Below, piece by piece: positions 2,988-15,366 of a stretch of DNA of 64,000 bases. The translations under genes and the position numbers were made by a program. The notes below the pieces were generated by a model. It made no database searches, was not told the DNA's origin, and worked only from the letters and a program-made list of their open reading frames with translations. Source of the stretch: Trichosphaerium sp. ATCC 40318 (taxonomy: Eukaryota; Protista; Tubulinea); contig JALMLS010000577.1 of assembly GCA_038496445.1 (NCBI GenBank), forward strand, positions 620,001-684,000, in the 5' to 3' direction. Every line of letters starts with the position of its first letter. The stretch's first letter is position 1.

Positions 2988-4923
2988 TTATGATTCTTCA
3001 TTCACCCATGCCTTGATGTATTTGAATACAGATTCTCTTGCGCGTATAAGAGACTCAGAATCCGTTGGAGAGGAAGGAAATATTGTGCAGCCATGGCCGT
3101 ATGGTGGATCAACCTAAAAAATTATCAATTAGATGCATGTTCTCAAACAAAGAGAAAAAAAAAGAATCACGTGCAACAATAGATGGCATTGTATCAGAAA
3201 GAGACTCTAAAATATTCCACGCAGCAACTGGGTCATCATATCCATTTGTGAATACAGTATTTGAGCTCTTTATATTGCGTCCACCATACCTTGCACCTTT
3301 TACAGTCAATGTGAGATCAGAAGTCGGTATCTTATTGTAAGTACCTATAGTCCAGTTTGTGTTTGGACGTGGCATTTCTGTCTTTGGAAGCTCTGGGAAT
3401 AGTTGATAGCACCAGTTCTAATGAATTATTTAATAAACTGTGAATGGGTATTGCATGGTAACGTACTTCCCATACTTTCAGATTAAACTCTTGAGGCCAC
3501 ACAGAATCTTGAGGAGATGTGAAAAAAACAGGAATTTCTGTGCACATCTGAAACCACCATGCTCTTTTTTGAGGTAAGTTTGTTTCAAAGCTAACTTAAA
3601 GTTGTTTCTTTCGAGAAATTGTGGACTAAGAGGATGTTGTACCTAGATGAAACTGCTAAGCCGTTTGGATTTGGTTCAAAGCTTTGAAGAGAAGATAAGA
3701 ATCCGTGTATAATATCAGGTGACCACTGAAAGAATATGTTACTTCTTGTTAGTACCAAGAATGCTTCAAACGGATCATCTTGGTATTCCGCAAATGTAGT
3801 ACAGAGTCCAGAAATATTACTGTACTGGACTGGTATAACAACAATCAACAAAGAGAGCAAGTATAGGTTAGGTAAGTCCGCTTCAGATATAACTGTACTT
3901 TGCTGTAATCTCATGGTGAGTTCTTGCCTCCCTACAAAAATATGGGTTCAGTACAAGCAAAACATACTTGGATAGCAGATTGATGTCAATGTTCGTACCA
4001 GCGTCAGTTTGTGAGAGTTTGCTAATGTTAGAAACAACTGACATTACACCATCGTAGCACCTAGGGTACTGTTGTTTGAGTACCATGGCATAACGATCGA
4101 GATACAGAAAGCCTTTTTTGGAAAAGGAGGTTATTACAATTAAAATGTCTGTACTGTAAACGATGTACCGTTTGTTGTAGTTATCCCAATGGGTGCCGAA
4201 GAAGCCCAACTAGCCTTAACGATGTGTGGATACTTCAACCTCATCCATGCCGATAACATGCCTTAGCGTTAGTTAGAACTTGGCAAAAAAAACGAGAAAA
4301 TTATTGGTGCACCTGGGTAGCTCCCACCTACTGTGATAACAGGGCAATCGCCAGAGCAATACATTTTTGTAAAATCGACTATAATTTTAATGGTATCTTC
4401 TACATAAAGTTCGTTAACATCTTCAAGTTGTCTCCCCAACAACCCATTGTCTCTTTGACGTACCAAGAGCTTGTTCTGCTGATAGATACACCAAGTTCTT
4501 TGTCTCTAGTGTATTTACAGGAAAGCTTTCTCCGTAGTATCTGTGCTCACGTGCTTTGGCGACAATAAGTTTAAAAATCACGTGTATCGAAGTGACAGTT
4601 CGTAACGTACCAATCAAAAGCGCTTTTAGCTCTTTTGCTAAAGCAACGAATTGATACGGCGCGCTTAGCGTAGTATTAGCCATTGGTGCTTCTCCTGGCA
4701 TGTATACTATCATTGGACCACCAGGTTGATAGTAATCGGTTGTAACGAGAACTTTTTGTTGAAACGTTTCCGTGTTTAGAGGATCAAAGTGGTCTGTTGT
4801 TTGTTTGTAGTAAATGATGTCTACGTTATTAGATAAAACTTCTCCTATTGGCACATCATGTAACAATACAGCAGTAGTCAGACTTATACACATCAGTGCT
4901 ACGGTTGTTACTAGTAATTGCAT
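2988..4923 (-). CDS. Secreted serine carboxypeptidase, family S28 (PRCP/PRSS16-like)
   Basis: Signal peptide MQLLVTTVALMCISLTTA; QTTDHF; EHRYYGES; LSAEQAL; nucleophile motif GGSYPG; WWFQMCTE; FTNGYDDP; multi-exon. Confidence 0.9.
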
Positions 4924-5512
4924 CTTTGTCACCGTGTTGTACTTTAGATGTCAACGATGATATTTTGCGATGAAAGCTGTTGACTACTATTAAGAAAACA
5001 ATATTTAGAGAATTCAGCGAAGACAATACAAAAGATTGAAACGAAAAAAGAGGTGTGCTAGATCCAGAAAATAACGGAAAGGATAGTAGAAAAGATAGAC
5101 AACAAGAGAAAAAGGAGAGATGACGGATGCCGGAATATTATCCATAGAGCCGACTTGAAAATCAAGGCAGTTTTGCTTATTTATCAAAGAAGGATTGTAT
5201 GAAAGAAGTTCCACTTGTGCAACTCACATTTTTCTAGAAACGTACCACAATAGACCAGTGTAACAGATTATTGAGAGCTCAAGCAAGACGGGTACCACCC
5301 AAGAATAACTTGAAATCGAAATCAATATTAAAACCCAAAACCAAATTGGTTTAATCTGGCAACTTCAACTGAATTATATCATAGGGAAAATTGCTTCGCA
5401 ACTTGTAAAAAAACCCACAAATTTTTCATAGTATTAACTATTTATTTCAAACTCCTTCATTTGCACTGTAACTGTCCACGTGTTTTGGTTTTTCATACAA
5501 CAACGCAATAAC

Positions 5513-7517
5513 TCAGAACATTATACCAGCAGTAAGCCTACGTGTGAATAGTGGCAAATCTCTAGCCAATGCCCTTTTATATCGGTTTGTAAACATGAAA
5601 AAAACTAAGTTGATTGTACAAGAAGAGTACTGTTTTGTTTTGTGATTTCTCACTTCTTGAAGCTCTTTGCCCACATTTCTACATTACGCCAAACATGCTC
5701 TCCTGGTGGAGGAAGTTCTACCATTTCGAATATAGCACGCAAGGATTCTATAGGTTAAGTATTAACAAAGATTACACAAAGAAAAAAAATAGAGAATTAG
5801 TTGTTAACAATGTATTGTACCCCAGTAAGTATCCTTAGTCTTCTTTTTGCTGTGCAATAGCTTATAATAAATAGGTTCCCATAAAGCATCATCTTTCACA
5901 ACAATAGAAAATTGCCTTAACAAGCATTAGTAAGCAAAAGCGAAAATCAAGCCAAAAAAAAAACAAAAATAAGGGCCTTTAAAGCAAGATGGTAAGAACT
6001 AAAGCGAAAAAAAGCGTACTTGCAAGTCAGTGAAATGCAGAAATATTCAGACTTAGTCTATAAACATTATTAAAACAAGCTATAAAACACAAAAGCACAA
6101 AATTCAATAAAAAGAAAAAAAAAAAGAAGGAACATACAAGGTTGGAGAAGATGTTCATCCATATTTCATCAGGGACCTTGGTTGCAAAGCATGATGTAAT
6201 TTCTTGTTTATATAGTACACCTACAATCTCATCCTTAAGATTTGTACCTCCAAACATGAACCACAAACTAAACAAGTTAATACATTAGAAGAAAAAAAAA
6301 CGCAAAGACAAGAAGAACTTACTTGTCACCAGTTACAACACTATGATACGCAATTGGCTTTGGTACATCTCCTTGCACACTGACACATTCCCAAGAAGCA
6401 TTATCTATAAACAACAAAACAATTAGCTCGCCTGTGATATAAACTTCAAGAAGACGTACCCAAGTCAAACGCCCACAAGTCATCGAAATCCTTCTCTTGT
6501 TTACCTTTCCTCAAACCACCAAAAACATAGAATTTGCTCTCAGTGATCCAAGACGCATGAGCGCTACGTGCAATAGGTAGTTTATTCTTAGGTTTATCTG
6601 TTTGAGGGCTAACGCATTCCCATGTTTTCGCCTCTACAAAGAACTATAAGCATTTTTTTTCATGTTTGCTTTAAAAGTACGTACTAGTGTCATACACGTG
6701 AATATCATTGTAGTATGTGCCTGAAGTACCTCCTTTACCGCCAAATACATAAATACATGATCCACATGCAACCATTGTATGTAATTGACGAGCAGGAGGT
6801 CCTTCTTTAAGCTTTCTCCACGTGTTTTTTTCTACACAAAAAAAAAACGTTAGATGAAACAAAACCCGTTGAGAGATTAACAGCATCCCTTTTATGGTTG
6901 TCAGTGACCTTACGTACTTGAATTAAAGCGCCAAAAGTCTTTTTGCGTATCTCCGTCGGAATCGTAGCCGCCAAAGACGTACATGTATGATCCTACAACA
7001 CATGCAGTATGGCCATATCGCGGAGATGGTTTTGGGTCTGCAACTTCGACTTCTGTCCATTTGCCTTTTTTGTTTTAGTTTTATTTTGTGTAAAGTATCG
7101 TTTAGGCTGACGCACCTCCTGAGTACGTATGTACATCATTCATATAGCTATTTGCGCGACCTCCGAATAAAACGATAGAATCGCCTATTACTACTGCAGT
7201 GCAGAGTGTGCGCTTAGGGTAGTCTTTTGACGACGCTTTAACAAAAGATTTTTTGTCTAGTGTTAATTTAGCGTTGTTTTGGTTTTCTAACAAGTACCTA
7301 GATCGTACACCACCATGCTAGATGCTGTGTCATCCTTATTACGGCCGCCAACGAAATAAATCTTGTTGTTCAATAGAACGCCTTGTATTTTTAGTTTTTA
7401 CCACATAATAAGGTGTTTACCTGCGCTTCCAGCAACAGCGCGTTTTGGTACATCACCAACGATAGCAAATTTAACTGACGATGTTCTTGGTGTCTCTGTC
7501 TTACGGAATAGCCTCAT
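5513..7517 (-). CDS. Kelch-repeat protein with C-terminal F-box
   Basis: Several Kelch repeats (IVLFGG, MYVFGG, IYVFGG, FYVFGG, MFGG) followed by FATKVPDEIWMNIFSNL...CK..DDALW. The end coordinate is approximate. Confidence 0.75.
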
Positions 7518-7804
7518 TATTACCTGTGGTTAATGACAACCGAATCGTTGATTAGCCGAAGAAGCAAAAAACTTAACCAAAACTGTAATTAAGCCATATC
7601 GTATTGAAAACACAGATCTTGTGCCGAAAATGACAGTAGAAGGAGCTTTTGTATTTGGAAGTCTAGCTTACAGCTACGCCAAAACGCGGTAAAGCCAGCT
7701 TCCTTACAATTGTAACGTACATTAACAAATGTTCAGATTTTTATTCTTTGACACCTTATGGTTTGTTTTTTTTTCTTGATACAAATATACAGTTTTTTTT
7801 TTCA

Positions 7805-9999
7805 TTACACTTCAGTAATGTTGTTCTTGTTTCTTCTCTTTTTTCTTCTTGCACTCTTTTTAGGTTTAGGAGCTTCCATTGCTTCTAATTCACGTGTTGA
7901 CGCGAGCATAGGTTTACCCTCAGCAATAGCGCTCAAAGAAGATCTGTTTGTTTTCTTTTCCATCTCGCTAGCTGCTATAGACGAAGGTTCTGTATCAATA
8001 GAATCTTCCATACTTGAGTCATCCTCGTTAGATGATTCTAAGGGGAAAAGTGTTAACACTCGTAACTAAAATACAAACGGGTGGTCGTACCAGATTCTCC
8101 CATGTTTAATATGAATGAATTGTGGTTTGCAACGACGTCGTCGTTTTTAGCTCTACCCTTGTCGTCATATTCATCATCTGTAGCTGTGCGACTCTTTGCA
8201 GTAGAACTACTTGCTCTAGAATAAAGTAAGAACAACCTCAAACTACAGCATAGAAACTGATTGAAAAAGAGAAAACGTACCTCTTTGCTTGACCTTCCAA
8301 TTGCCAGAATAGTTTGAGAATTGGCCATGCAATGTATATAAGTGTTACACATGCCGTTATTTCGAGCATAAGAGCAATAAACGCGATTATGAAGTCTCTG
8401 ATATTAGTGACTAAATGTTTTCTTTGAATTCTTTGTTCTTCTTGACTAAAAACATGATTAGTTTCTTCACTTTCATCAAGTGCATCGACACAAAAAACGT
8501 ACAATAATTGTTCTCTAAAGGGAATCAAAGATCTAGTGATAATTGTCATGTTACCATACCAATACTCAGAATTCACTGGAAAGGCGTTTGTGTCACTGAA
8601 CTGGTCTTTACGCTGTGACATTGTCAGTAAGGAAGTTGCTGTTGAAAAAAAAAATTACGTACAAACACAGCCAGTCGTCTCCACTCATCAGTTATTGTAA
8701 TAGCTTCAAGGACGTCAGGAGATGCCTAAAAACAATAAGATACATCAACGTGTTCTAAACTACCAATACTTCATTAAATCTATCTCTAAATTCTCCTTTC
8801 AAAACAATCTACAACATGTTAGACAACAACAATACGTCAAACAACAATTTTTTCTTTGTCTTATAAAAATCTGTTTAATAACTTACTTCTAACTCATGCC
8901 TAGTAGAGTCTTTTTGGCTTAACTTATCGGTTAATGAAAGATACTCATCAATATCCTCAAAATATCCTAAATAATAACAACTTCAGAAAAAACAGGTCGA
9001 TGTACTGTTACTGTTGGGAATATTTTCCGAACATACCTCTGGTGAAAACTACTCCAAGAATACCCCTTTCTTCACTCTCATACTCTGTAAACTAAATGAA
9101 ATTCATAAGAAACGAGTAATTTGTAAAGAATAAGCACTCACCAAAGCTTCACGTATAACACCATACAAAGCACGAGATGTATCAGCGTATTCGGAGAAAC
9201 TTTCTTCAAGTACAAAGTCGAAAATGATTCTGTTAAGTACATTATACCAGTCAAGAGACTGGGTAAAAGAAACAGAGAGATTGTCAACCTAATATGTCGT
9301 CATCAGCACAAAGCAAATAAGGAAAAAGAAAACTCATGGGTTTTTTTTGGAAAACTGTATTTTTTTGTACCTTAGATCTTTCTACAGGTATACCATCTGC
9401 ATACAATATAGCTTGATTTAATACATCAAAACTCACTATAGTTTTAGCAACAATATCCCGGAGCTCCTTCATCTTCTCATCAACTCTAAGCCTCGCCTCC
9501 CCTTAAAGAAACAAAATGTTAGCTGTTTAGTCGTCAATAGGAAAAATCGAAACGAGAACTGTTACGATTATCAGAAAACTAATTTCTCCGTCGGAGTGGT
9601 ATCCTAAACTTAGTAATTGACCAAGAGACACTTACTCATTTCGTTAGCTTCTAGGGTACCACCAGAGGTTACAAAAATTGAAGACAAATCACGCTCTTCG
9701 CCAATAACGTCAGCGAATTCTATTGAGACTTTTACGAGTTTTACACGAGCGTCGAACTCTCTATACTGGTGTAGTTGAATACAAATCAGCAGAAAAAAAT
9801 AGAAGAAGGAAAGAGCTGATAATACGCCTAACTCGTGTTAGTGCATGTTTAGACGTTTTTAGGGGTGTTTCAAGTGTGTATGAGCCTTACCGATCAATGC
9901 TCTTGTAAATCCATTACGTAGACTTCTACGCACTGCTATTTGACTCTTATTACGCGCTGGAATACAACCGCATAGAAGTAACCATTGATGACAAGCCAT
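7805..9999 (-). CDS. Two-TM membrane protein with NIT (nitrate/nitrite-sensing) domain and low-complexity cytoplasmic tail
   Basis: Spliced translation gives TM1 (ALIGVLSALSFFYFFLLICI); EERDLSSIFVTSGG..EMREARLRVD; RSKVDNLSVS..DWYNVL; TEYESEERGILGVVFTRG; YWYGNMT; TM2 (IIAFIALMLEITACVTLIYIAWPIL). This matches my recollection of the duplicated ER motifs of NIT domains. Confidence 0.7.
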
Positions 10000-10419
10000 G
10001 TTGTTGCAGTTGCGCTTGAATTTCAAAATGCTAAAAACTGTGGAACTTTCTGCACTTGTAATTCTCCTCACTCAAAAAACACAAGCCTATAGAATCGTAT
10101 TACTGGAGTAGAAAGTCGTTTTGAATCGATAGCAAGTTTTCCACTCCCAAAACAGTATAAAACCATGGAAAGTGTTTATACGGCGATACATAGTCCTAAT
10201 TTCCGCATAGCTAGTGTTTTAACGCAACTTTTTCCGGAGAAATTATGACTTACGAGTCTGCAGGTGTCAAGCACTTCACAACAGCCTTTCGTTACAAATA
10301 CTGCAATCTCTCGGACTTACTGCTGTACAATAACCCATGGTCCGTTGCATCGTTTTCAAGCAAACAGGAGTCAAATACGTTTTCGACTTCATAGGTTGTC
10401 AGTTTTTTTTTTGTTTTAT

Positions 10420-13400
10420 TTACATTTTTACATCCTCCATCGCTGCTTCTTCATCACTATCAGGAATAATGATATCAGCGTCTTGCAATGATAGTATTGG
10501 CATATCTTCATTAACAGATAAAGGTCCTGAAGATAGCCGTTGGCGCTTAGAGCCAAAACCAAGTCGAGAAAAATTTGGTTTTGCAGGCCTACACAAAAGA
10601 AACTTAACGCAAGAAAAAAAACCAAATGAACTGACATTTGTTAAAACTAAGTGTTTTATTATTAGCCGAAAAGAAAACTCCATTAAAAAATAAAATACTA
10701 AAAATAGTCAAAAAGATAAGATAAAACGGCGTACGATATGGACTCATCATCAGAGTCTTCTATTGGTTCAAGTTCGTCTAAATCTTCAACACTTGTTTCA
10801 TCTTGTCTTTTTCGTTTATACCATGAGTTACCGTTATTGGTATCATTCATCCAAGGCCGTTTAAGCGAAAGCCTCCCAGTTCTCAAGAAAGGGCTTCTGA
10901 ATTGAGACCCTGAAGTAAAAAATCAGTTTGAGAAAAAATAGCCAAGAAAAACAGGTATTAAATACTTGTCTTCTTTCGCAAAGTATGTACCTGATATAGG
11001 ACTAGGTGTTGACGCTGAATAGAATTTATTCAGGTTAGACGTAGACTTCCTCAACAAAGGAGTTGTAGGCGATATGCCAACACAAGAAGGAATCGGGGAA
11101 TCCAAACTACCAAAGCTTCTACTCAGAGGCTCTTGAGGAACAACATCGAGCCTGTAGTTACGTTAATAACATACTCACTAATTATACGTACGTAGGAGAA
11201 GGTAATGATGATGTACTACGAGCCAAGAATGATGTGTCAAGTTGTACAGTTTCTTTTGAAATCGTTTGAACAACTTTCTGGTTTTCTCCAGAGTTTGATT
11301 TTTCTTCAGCATACAACGCGCTCTCAAGCTCAGACGATAATGCCCTCGCTAGTGGTTTAGATCCTTTGCGCTCTGTATCATCCGAAGACTTGGCAAAGTA
11401 CTTGCTTCGATAGATTACGCGTTTGTGAGGCGAAGGTGTGCTAGGAGCAAGCACGGTAGCTGTGGAGCGTCTATTCTTTGTGGCATTTGCAATTAAATCC
11501 TTAAGCAGAGGCGCTGTTCGTCGTTTGGTTGGACTTGATTTAGAGTTACCATTTGGTACTGCTTTGGATATATTTGGTTCTGGCGTTTGTTGTGGTATTG
11601 TAAAACCTGGTCTAGGTGCGTTTTGAACGTGTGCAAATCCATTTATGTAATTAAGTTTGGGTCTTGAACGCAACTTAAGTGGTCTTGCAAGCTTTTGTGG
11701 CTGATAAAAAAAAACGTTTTAATGTAATGCGTAGTAATACTTTTGTAGCGTACCTTTTTACTATTTTCTATTTTTTTTGTCTTCCTTGGAGGATTAAATG
11801 GCTTTACAACTGATTTTGAAGGTTATTAGGCTGTTAAGGAAGTGACAAAAAAATAAACAAAATAAAAACTGAACATTAATTTTGCGGATACTAAAGTAGT
11901 TTGTAACAGAATTCTGTTGGACTGGTATCCCTCCTGATAACCTCAAAGATCGATTCGTTCTTCCGATATATCGCTTAGGTTCCGCTGGGGATTGATTATT
12001 ACCAACAATCTCGTCATACTCACTTTCAGCTGTTGCCTATTTAAGACCTTTAAAAACGTGCCAAATTAAAACCTTATTCATGCATACCTCAAAACATTGT
12101 TTGGTAAAAGGATCCAAGACGCCTTTTCTACATAATTTTAATGCTATATCAGGTGCCAGTGGACTACCAAGAAAATTCAAGGCATCAATATTGAGATTTC
12201 GTGGTAGAGGCCTAAAATGTAAACAAATTAGTTTACAGGCCAAGCAAGTCATGTTTAATTTGACTATTGCACAACAATAGTCAAGAATTGCTGTAAAATT
12301 TTACACACCTTAAAGGAATGACTGTGTTTGTTTTAGGATCAAAAACACGTTGATGTTTAAACGTAAGTTCGGCTTTTTGAAACCGCTCTTCATAGTCATC
12401 AGGTACTGTAAAAGTGCCTCTGAGTACTTTAAACACCTGTATAAATAATTGAATAGATAGTTAAATAAATAAAAAGAGTAAAAAGTGGATTTGATGCAAC
12501 AGTGTTAGTGCAACAAAAAATAAGAAAAAAATAGGAACAAAAGTGTCACAAAATCATTTTGACACGAAAATGTACGCACCCTGTTCATTTCTTTGTACTT
12601 TGATATGTACGTATAAGCTTTTTTTATACCAACCCCACATATATTAGGCAAGTAATCACATCCAGCCAGTATACACATATGACGTATCATTGAAAAATTA
12701 AAGTGCTTCAAACCAGGTAATTCTGTACAGTTACACAAACTTTCACGTTTAATTTCTTGACCATTACCCTGCTTATCGAGCTTAAATATTACCTAAAAAT
12801 TCCATTAAACAACAAATAAATATAAATAAAATTACAGTGCAACAGTCAGTACTCAATTACAGTATGTAAACGCACGAGAAAAGAAGTAAGGCTCAATTCA
12901 ATATTGCAAAAAAAAAGAAGTTTTTTTTTCATCAGGTTTTCTTTTGCGTACACGTTTAGCGCCATAGGCTATCAAATCAGAGTCTTCTGTAATGATAGCG
13001 CTCACATAATTTGTCAAAGACAAAAAAGCGAGTTGTGCATCAGCTTCATAAGGTGCGACGAAATACTCGATACCGTGTTTCTGAAGTACCTAGTGTAAGT
13101 GTTAGAAGGCTTGATTGTCACTTGAGAACAATTTGTTTGGGTTTTTGTAAAAATAATAAGACGTTAGCCAATAGCGATGTCGTACCTTTATAAGGTTGTA
13201 TGCTAACAAAGGCGTTATGTTTACAGCCTTTGAAAAATATTCGCGGGCTTTGGCACGCTGGCCTTTTTGTAGATAGTTAATGGCTTGCTGTTTAGCCTGT
13301 TCGCGTCGCCTGGTATGGTTGGTAAACCGTGAATTACACGTTTTCGTTTACAACTTACTCTCTTCTATGTATTTCTTCTCCGCTCTTCGCTGGAAGTGCT

Positions 13401-13952: not shown

Positions 13953-15366
13953 ATGAGTGACACCTCCTGTCAAAAAACAAACCAATTCAATGTTGTTCGT
14001 TTGTACAATTTACGACAAGGGTGGCAGTACCACCAACCAAGCCGTATGAAGTCAAAGAAGAAAAAGGGGAGGTTTGTAAGCGTAAACGATACAGCGTATT
14101 ACGGTCAGCGCCACACAGTTAATATACCAAAACCAAGGCGTCGTGCAACCTCCTGGACAGTAGCTAAACCAAAACGATTGTCTCACGTTCAAATGCCAGA
14201 ATTCGGCGCTAACCGCCAGCATTTACGTGGTAATCTTATTCAAGACCTACGTATGTATCTTTCGCGCGATGTTGTGTTCTAATACGCAAAAGGCAAATGT
14301 ATTAACGACCCAGAAAGTTCCGACGTTGTATTTTTGGTAGAAGGTAGCTCAAGAACTTCTACAAAGCGTGCTTACGCTTCTAGATGGTTATTGTCAGGTA
14401 TGATCAAAAAAAAATTAACTTGTTTTTTGGTTTTGTAGATGTGTCAAATAAATGACTCTGACGCTTTTATTAGTGCGTTCAGAGTATTTCCGAGCTCTTC
14501 TTCAGGTAACCCATTTGATATAAAAAACGAAACGACTTTTTCTAAACTTAACTCATAGTAAAAAACAATCCAGGCTAACTGTACGCATCTATAGGGTCCC
14601 ATGAAAGAGAGCGATAACTCAGAGATTGTTTTACGTGGTGTAAAATATGAATCCTTCGTTGGCGTCTTACACTACATTTATACTGAGAATGTTAGCTTCA
14701 GTTTACTTCATTTTGATACTGTACTTGATATCTTGATTCTATCGGATCGTTTCCTTCTATCAAACTTGAAATCTATTGCAGAGCAATTCGTATTGTCTAC
14801 TTTGAATGAAAGGAATGTTATAAAGGCAATACTTGTTGCTTATAAGGCAAATGTTAAAATGTTAAGAGAGAGGTCAATGGAGTATATCTTAAAACACAAG
14901 GTACTTTTTCAACTAGATTAAACGAGTCTGGTCATCGAGTCTTAGAGCGGCAATGCATAGCGTTGGCTTTATGCGAGTTCCATTTGAATGGAGCTTGTCA
15001 AACACGGTCGTTTGGACGCGGTGCTGGATCAAACAAAAAGAGATTGACTTTAGCTGTCAATCCAACGTTTTTTTCCAACCTAAGAAAGACCACCTTTATG
15101 TTGAAAAAGCGTTTTATTCTCACTAACAAAAACAATCTTATCTTAGTACAATTCTTTGTTTCGGTTTTTTCAGAAAATACAAATTATTTGTTTTGTTGTC
15201 CTTGTGTGGCTCTATTTTTGTTTTTTGTTTGTTATTATTGTTTTAAAGATTGGATATATTGCTTTTATGCTTACTTTATTTGTAGAAACTCGTACAGATG
15301 CAACCAGAGTTTGAAAATTTAAAAAAAAATCCAGATTTGCTTCTTGAGTTGGTACGGCGCTTATAG
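13953..15366 (+). CDS. BTB/POZ domain protein
   Basis: SDVVFLVE, RSEYFRALL, MKESDNSEIVLRGV..F..VLHYIYT, L.LSDRFLLSNLKSIAE; multi-exon. The start codon is uncertain (13953 or 14046). Confidence 0.85.

Follow-up and report, generated by a model that had tools for sequence, protein, structure and literature searches.

A spliced and transcribed TM-NIT-TM gene without an output domain in an amoeba, from a family whose membrane segments appear more conserved than its sensor

In the stretch of DNA analysed here (the window: 64,000 nucleotides (nt) of contig JALMLS010000577.1 from Trichosphaerium sp. ATCC 40318), the minus strand from 9999 down to 7805 carries a 12-exon gene with its ATG at 9999-9997, its TAA stop codon at 7807-7805 and a product of 484 amino acids (aa). 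This gene is real, spliced and transcribed, and it provides a new eukaryotic lineage, the amoebae, for a known protein design in which a NIT sensor domain lies between two transmembrane (TM) helices and is followed by no output domain (TM-NIT-TM). The unexplained feature that is the family's own, judging from the aligned sequences, is a membrane module that appears more conserved than the sensor. We lean slightly towards reading the product as a two-pass amoeba membrane receptor with its NIT sensor outside, from which the signal would be relayed by this conserved membrane-proximal module to a separate partner.

The gene model was built by hand from the minus strand of 7400-10400, in which candidate exons were translated, and its start was aligned with the N-termini of complete homolog open reading frames (ORFs). 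The eleven introns are all GT-AG and more AT-rich than the exons. Contigs assembled from three sequencing runs (X1 from coded organism A, X2 and X3 from coded organism B) were mapped to 7600-10200: all 11 predicted exon joints are present in X2/X3 contigs, 100% identical to the window, and several also in X1 contigs (95-99% identical), where the one letter difference listed (position 9700) is synonymous. Because every intron appears as a joint in assembled contigs, the splicing of the gene is observed, beyond prediction. The transcript contigs begin near 10001, run through the stop codon and end at 7747-7782 (25-60 nt past it), a span that gives no sign of further coding exons. A first-pass annotation, made from the letters of the window alone, had proposed a eukaryotic, intron-rich gene as opposed to bacterial contamination, and eleven spliceosomal introns together with transcription bear this out. 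All four peptide stretches that it quoted were found in the spliced minus-strand reading frame; the long intron that it described does exist, with a length of 134 bp (9635-9502) and not ~133 bp (9635-9503); and the two Glu-Arg (ER) motifs on which its proposal hinged survive splicing, the transcript joints keeping both E81/R82 and E201/R202 (the exon from 9091 reads FTEYESEERG). The introns are very short (38, 50, 50, 53, 57, 63, 65, 70, 78, 82 and 134 bp) and several of their donors read GTACGT.

It is very improbable that the gene is what is left of a truncated NIT-cyclase or NIT-kinase gene, a mis-assembled part of one, or bacterial contamination. A remnant would be in keeping with the cyclase or kinase domains that animal and algal NIT proteins often bear (PMC7400543, PMC9481584), but the transcript contigs pass the stop codon before they end, and at least three further transcriptomes contain complete ORFs, 412-445 aa long, that share these ends. 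Contamination is opposed by the eleven spliceosomal introns and by the lack of any relative among 185,579 prokaryote genomes searched with two family patterns. The transcript ends and the complete homolog ORFs essentially exclude a truncated remnant.

When the exon-9 reading (110 aa) was searched with phmmer against 1.84 billion representatives, only P0001 (414 aa), P0003 (412 aa), P0004 (429 aa) and a fragment, P0002 (86 aa), were returned; the first three share the TM-NIT-TM architecture of the window protein. In local alignment the joined window model matches P0001 over residues 1-370 (43% identity over 382 aa, E 4e-95) and P0003 and P0004 at 32-33% identity, and local tblastn of the database homologs against the window DNA matched the exons in order (E 2e-16 to 3e-24). 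P0001, P0003 and P0004 score 77.2, 75.3 and 75.0 bits with the Pfam NIT profile (PF08376), whose gathering score is 24.9; their matches span profile positions 2-236 of 239, and they have no other Pfam match of note. An AlphaFold2 model of P0001, the closest homolog, made from a 7-row family alignment (mean predicted local distance difference test score, pLDDT, 78; predicted TM-score, pTM, 0.67), contains two consecutive four-helix bundles, as does NasR (4AKK). Foldseek against PDB placed NasR first (E 9e-7, probability 1.0; runner-up E 0.08), and VIA-align superposed the two over 269 residues (Z 29.1, root-mean-square deviation 3.6; model 41-336, NasR 9-287), its runners-up at Z 11.9 and below being sensors with one four-helix bundle (PilJ, Tar, McpN), which span only half of the domain. 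McpN, which had been suggested as a comparator beside NasR, is a PilJ-type sensor (PMC12358799) and not a NIT protein, and it matches one bundle only (Z 11.5). In the ESM Atlas, a search by shape with the model brought up bacterial NIT kinases, NIT-HAMP proteins and mollusc NIT guanylate cyclases (TM-scores 0.66-0.74), and a feature search of the Atlas excluding NIT returned generic four-helix-bundle sensors only, all below 0.85. The Glu-Arg pairs E81/R82 (helix 1) and E201/R202 (helix 5) are invariant in five of five family members, and their spacing is 120 residues in the window protein compared with 125 in P0001; six ectodomain arginines are invariant in the family, both ER motifs included, as are W292, N295 and M296 in the last NIT helix. 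On Pfam profile and fold evidence taken from homologs, we hold with high confidence that the ectodomain is a NIT domain, as the first-pass annotation had read it, the full-length homologs passing Pfam NIT and the closest one folding like NasR. The last NIT helix also holds an N-M-[TS] sequon (aa 295-297, window 8544-8552, minus strand) that is kept in all family members and could be an N-glycosylation site, or merely part of the NIT W..NM motif. A likeness of P0001 residues ~106-155 (..ALSAL..L...LRVD.V) to the E-F region of hemoglobin alpha (E 0.016-0.05 for single chains, lower only for tandem di-alpha constructs) was judged to be chance helical similarity, and the motif is poorly shared by the window protein.

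The window protein begins with a cytoplasmic segment, residues 1-33, that has six basic and no acidic residues, is Cys-rich and contains LLCGC. Two hydrophobic segments, TM1 (~aa 34-56) and TM2 (~aa 328-352; hydropathy scan, final-model coordinates), border the helical ectodomain (~aa 57-327), and a low-complexity tail of ~130 aa follows, acidic, basic and Ser-rich (D10 E14 K14 R9 S19); an earlier description of this tail as short, acidic/basic and of low complexity was right as to composition but not as to length, ~130 aa being not very short. The further claim that no output domain is present stands for the window protein and for every relative found. Scanned exon by exon, the tail exons 11 and 12 have no Pfam match; there is no class III cyclase domain after TM2, judging by Pfam on the tail exons, by homologs that carry NIT only and by a transcript that ends shortly past the stop codon; and HAMP, MCP-signal and HisKA/HATPase outputs were not detected by Pfam in the window exons or in the homologs. 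Only about 13 conserved residues follow TM2 and, since all full-length members (402-484 aa) end soon after it, the stand-alone design is a conserved feature and not a truncation. The tail itself ends in a polybasic run, APKPKKSARRKKRRNK (aa 463-478, window 7826-7873, minus strand), which is absent from all homologs and looks like a nuclear-localisation or acidic-lipid-binding signal.

Conservation in the family is concentrated at the membrane. Mean pairwise identity, calculated from only five distinct sequences, is 63% in the cytoplasmic N-terminus, 51% in TM1, 62% in TM2 and 62% in the 13 juxtamembrane residues, compared with 31-32% in the NIT halves and 28% in the tail. Invariant residues in and just after TM2 include E339 (mid-membrane), A342, C343, L346, Y348, P352, K355-L-F-W358 and E361, and those of the N-terminus are C10, G11, C12, R24, R28 and R33; the juxtamembrane stretch of the family reads AWP[VI]LKLFWxLE. 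In the P0001 model, one helix runs from 18 to 90 (TM1 into NIT helix 1) and another from 301 to 385 (the last NIT helix, TM2 and on into the cytoplasm), and such continuous sensor-to-membrane helices, as modelled, are the usual geometry for passing a sensor movement across the membrane. With conservation in the N-terminus, both TM helices and the juxtamembrane stretch exceeding that of the sensor, the pattern points to an output that would depend on a partner. We hypothesize that a small anion, most likely nitrate or nitrite or a related N-oxyanion derived from nitric oxide (NO), binds between the two NIT bundles and moves the two membrane-spanning helices, and that the conserved membrane-proximal module could hand on this movement to another protein, a partner located in or at the membrane. 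Short motifs for sorting or phosphorylation might be offered by the tail, which is variable, acidic and Ser-rich.

The absence of an output domain could also belong to a membrane-anchored NIT protein that does not signal at all, whose role would be limited to binding an anion, buffering it or presenting it (to a transporter, for example) or to serving as a decoy, and which would be sorted by motifs in its tail. Such a protein would also suit a tail that holds short motifs only, and bacterial proteins of ~354 aa, partly NIT-annotated and with no other common Pfam family, align near full length with the model. We nevertheless consider it unlikely: a passive anchor would need no N-terminus, TM2 and juxtamembrane stretch conserved at 62-63% while its binding domain drifts to 31%, and the continuity of sensor and membrane helices is that usual for signal transmission.

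Alternatively, the module formed by the N-terminus, TM1, TM2 and the juxtamembrane stretch might itself be the effector, for example an oligomeric pore of TM1 and TM2 or a proton/ion pathway, lined by the invariant Glu339 and opened by the ligand of the NIT domain. P2X and ASIC/ENaC channels bind their ligands through a large ectodomain set between two TM helices and keep their N- and C-termini inside the cell, and the topology of the amoeba protein matches that of such two-TM ligand-gated channels. The TM helices and the juxtamembrane stretch being twice as conserved as the sensor, with E339, A342, C343, L346 and Y348 of TM2 invariant and no other output detectable by Pfam in exons or homologs, would be consistent with this idea. 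Yet in Foldseek, VIA-align and the Atlas feature search no channel family resembled the protein in sequence or fold, the structural neighbours are all allosteric sensors and no pores, and a lone conserved acidic TM residue is equally typical of partner-subunit assembly, so that we regard a gated ion pathway as distinctly unlikely. If true, amoebae would possess a class of two-TM channel, gated by anions, that was not known before.

Several points weigh against the receptor that we prefer, relaying a nitrate or nitrite signal to a partner. The Pfam and fold evidence for NIT rests on homologs of the window protein, and the conservation figures come from no more sequences than the five given above. 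Neither the family profile nor the P0001 ectodomain retrieved NasR when PDB was searched by sequence, the hemoglobin alpha likeness described above being the only match. Single window exons (15-63 aa each) gave no match to Pfam even at E up to 10, a blank that is uninformative and no evidence against NIT since the exons are too short. In the gene neighbourhood of 2.5-16 kb, where ORFs were read by eye only, no nitrate-related gene stood out. Lastly, some NIT domains are reported to bind neither nitrate nor nitrite (PMC13343842), which speaks for a protein of the same architecture with another ligand, the NIT fold being re-used for a different small molecule or a protein. The low identity of the ectodomain, only 31% within the family and only 16-17% to NasR, leaves room for this, and no sign of nitrate assimilation by the amoeba was met here, although this does not prove that it is absent. 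In the ectodomain, the two ER motifs and another four arginines are nonetheless invariant, as would be expected of an anion pocket, and E175/R176 on helix 5 of NasR, to which the helix-5 Glu-Arg pair of the amoeba protein corresponds, are predicted nitrate-pocket residues (PMC7496416). A ligand other than nitrate or nitrite is, on balance, unlikely.

As delimited here, the amoeba TM-NIT-TM family consists of P0001, P0003/P0008, P0004, P0005 and the window protein. Its members share an N-terminal LLCGC/basic segment, LE[VI][TI]AC in TM2, a juxtamembrane [WY]P..KLFW..E and a length of 400-490 aa, all of which the window protein fits, and those in public data bear automatic Pfam labels only. The family is small, being seen only in the window's organism, Trichosphaerium, two MMETSP transcriptomes and one environmental contig: P0004 comes from Trichosphaerium sp. 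ATCC 40318, an amoebozoan (MMETSP0405), a different MMETSP transcriptome supplies the two ORFs P0001 and P0006, and a single sample yielded two paralogs, to which P0003, P0008 and P0005 belong. The paralogs P0003 and P0005 (L009 and L010; JGI transcriptome sample 3300016894) indicate that at least one species has two copies; within the window, tblastn found no paralog and the gene is present in one copy only. P0002 is encoded on a 1.2-kb environmental contig (L001, 34-339, plus strand; GC 41%) and carries the last-NIT-helix/TM2 exon of a relative; its ORF reads through an intron-like insert at the site of the window's 57-bp intron, suggesting that the position of this intron is conserved between the two. 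No relatives were found in JGI metagenome contigs or in the 185,579 prokaryote genomes, the two family patterns being applied in the latter. A degenerate DNA pattern for AWP[VI]LKLFW had 7 matches in metagenome contigs, none of them family by tblastn, and the three loci whose ORFs were read (L002, L004 and L006) proved to be bacterial genes without relation to it. When the family profile or residues 1-385 of P0001 served as query in word-index protein searches, only P0001, P0003 and P0005 were returned; the blanks of these searches mean little since they missed even P0004.

A sensor of this layout is not unprecedented. In Pelagomonas calceolata, one of three NIT proteins has NIT as its sole domain, flanked by a TM helix on either side (Guerin et al. 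2022, PMC9481584); it has been proposed as an external sensor of nitrate/nitrite, its transcript is higher in low-nitrate water, and its homologs are reported only in pelagophytes, dictyochophytes and one cryptophyte (PMC9481584). Like the amoeba protein, it belongs to a protist, places NIT between two TM helices and lacks an output domain, and the novelty of design that the first-pass annotation implied is reduced accordingly, the output-less form being already published (PMC9481584). Pelagomonas is, however, a photosynthetic, nitrate-assimilating stramenopile of another supergroup, its protein is likened here by architecture, and the conserved N-terminal/TM2/juxtamembrane module of the amoeba family is not described for it. 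This module was not seen outside the family in the phmmer search of 1.84 billion representatives.

Other NIT proteins share the sensor and differ in what it is attached to. NasR of Klebsiella oxytoca has the fold of two four-helix bundles seen in the P0001 model and a matching helix-5 Glu-Arg pair, but it is soluble, cytoplasmic and fused to an ANTAR RNA-binding output, and the identity is only 16-17%. NIT domains have been published for animal guanylate cyclases (PMC7400543); those of placozoans, molluscs and Platynereis (NIT-GC1) are TM-NIT-TM in a eukaryote, with a TM-score of 0.66 for sensor and TM helices, and carry a C-terminal cyclase where the amoeba protein has its low-complexity tail. 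The response of Platynereis NIT-GC1 to an NO donor requires its NIT domain (bioRxiv 10.1101/2023.08.02.551600). Bacterial NIT chemoreceptors and kinases (PscN, Dd15070, CvnA-type) hold an extracytoplasmic NIT domain between two TM helices, as the amoeba protein does, and are its best shape neighbours (TM-scores 0.69-0.74); their outputs, HAMP plus MCP-signal or HATPase, are missing from the amoeba protein. Bacterial NIT domains bind nitrate and nitrite with dissociation constants (KD) of 2-47 µM (PMC12358799). A close bacterial relative of the amoeba family was not found by phmmer against the 1.84 billion representatives or among the 185,579 prokaryote genomes. Short bacterial NIT-like proteins in ESM Atlas clusters of ~354-356 aa are similar in size to the amoeba protein, and NIT is the only common Pfam family in these clusters. 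One of them aligns over 322 residues (TM-score 0.76 by target), with NIT on only 17% of its members; another, with NIT on 92%, was found by language-model features and not by alignment. These clusters are leads only. No paper linking NIT to amoebae was found in the literature covered, to which a 2023 Mol Microbiol work on eukaryotic NIT domains did not belong.

The exons and other features are listed in Table 1. One X3 contig uses an alternative 45-bp intron within exon 9. What then remains of the exon's end is a micro-exon of 12 nt (8514-8503), and the frame meets a TGA stop after aa 291; this isoform would lose the last NIT helix, TM2 and the tail, and is probably minor and unproductive. The ORFs around the gene appear, by eye, to be exons of unrelated genes: a peptidase-like secreted protein, kelch-like repeats, an XPG/exonuclease-like protein and a BTB-like exon.

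Table 1. Window positions of the gene, its exons and other features
Feature	Position	Strand	Basis
Whole coding region	7805..9999	-	Translated manual model and all 11 transcript joints
Exon 1: cytoplasmic N-terminus (aa 1-33, net charge +6; LLCGC at 9978-9964) and start of TM1	9891..9999	-	Translation; family identity 63%
Exon 2: remainder of TM1 (aa 34-56, 9900-9769) and NIT helix 1 with first Glu-Arg motif E81 R82 (9696-9691)	9636..9827	-	Joints 9826/9890 and 9500/9635
Exon 3: NIT, first four-helix bundle	9371..9501	-	Transcript joints, translation, alignment with P0001
Exon 4: NIT, SLDWYN stretch, invariant R183 and R190	9142..9288	-	Transcript joints, tblastn, family alignment
Exon 5: NIT helix 5, second Glu-Arg motif E201 R202 (9070-9065)	9037..9091	-	Acceptor 9091 by joint 9091/9142
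Exon 6: NIT	8887..8966	-	Transcript joints, translation
Exon 7: NIT	8764..8808	-	Transcript joints, translation
Exon 8: NIT, preceded by 38-bp intron	8663..8725	-	Transcript joints, translation
Exon 9: last NIT helix, conserved W..NM[TS] motif (WYGNMT, 8561-8544)	8503..8612	-	Joint 8445/8503 in X2
Alternative 45-bp GT-AG intron (8559-8515)	8515..8559	-	One X3 contig
57-bp in-frame intron, open frame if retained	8446..8502	-	Removed in X2 contig; spliced form aligns ungapped with P0001, P0003 and P0004
Exon 10: TM2 (aa 328-352, 8396-8322), invariant mid-membrane Glu339 (8363-8361), juxtamembrane AWPILKLFWQLE stretch (to 8283)	8281..8445	-	Alignment, hydropathy
Exon 11: Ser/Asp-rich tail, semi-conserved HN...L motif (8142-8107)	8091..8215	-	Translation, alignment; no Pfam match
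Exon 12: acidic, Ser-rich tail, polybasic end (aa 463-478, 7873-7826), stop	7805..8037	-	Translation; no Pfam match
Neighbouring ORF	4423-4932	-	Judged by eye only
Neighbouring ORF	6671-7293	-	Judged by eye only
Neighbouring ORF	11182-12738	-	Judged by eye only
Neighbouring ORF	14601-14921	+	Judged by eye only

NIT sensors are well studied in bacteria and in eukaryotes have been noticed recently, mostly fused to guanylate cyclases or kinases; with the gene described here, the output-less TM-NIT-TM design now extends to heterotrophic amoebae. The practical importance of this is modest until a ligand or partner is found. In the amoeba lineage, the strongest selection appears to fall on the membrane-proximal segments instead of the sensor, and E339, the KLFW stretch and the LLCGC motif could serve as handles on how a sensor without an enzymatic domain signals. 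One may further ask what advantage an amoeba that feeds on bacteria might draw from sensing nitrate, nitrite or anions derived from NO.

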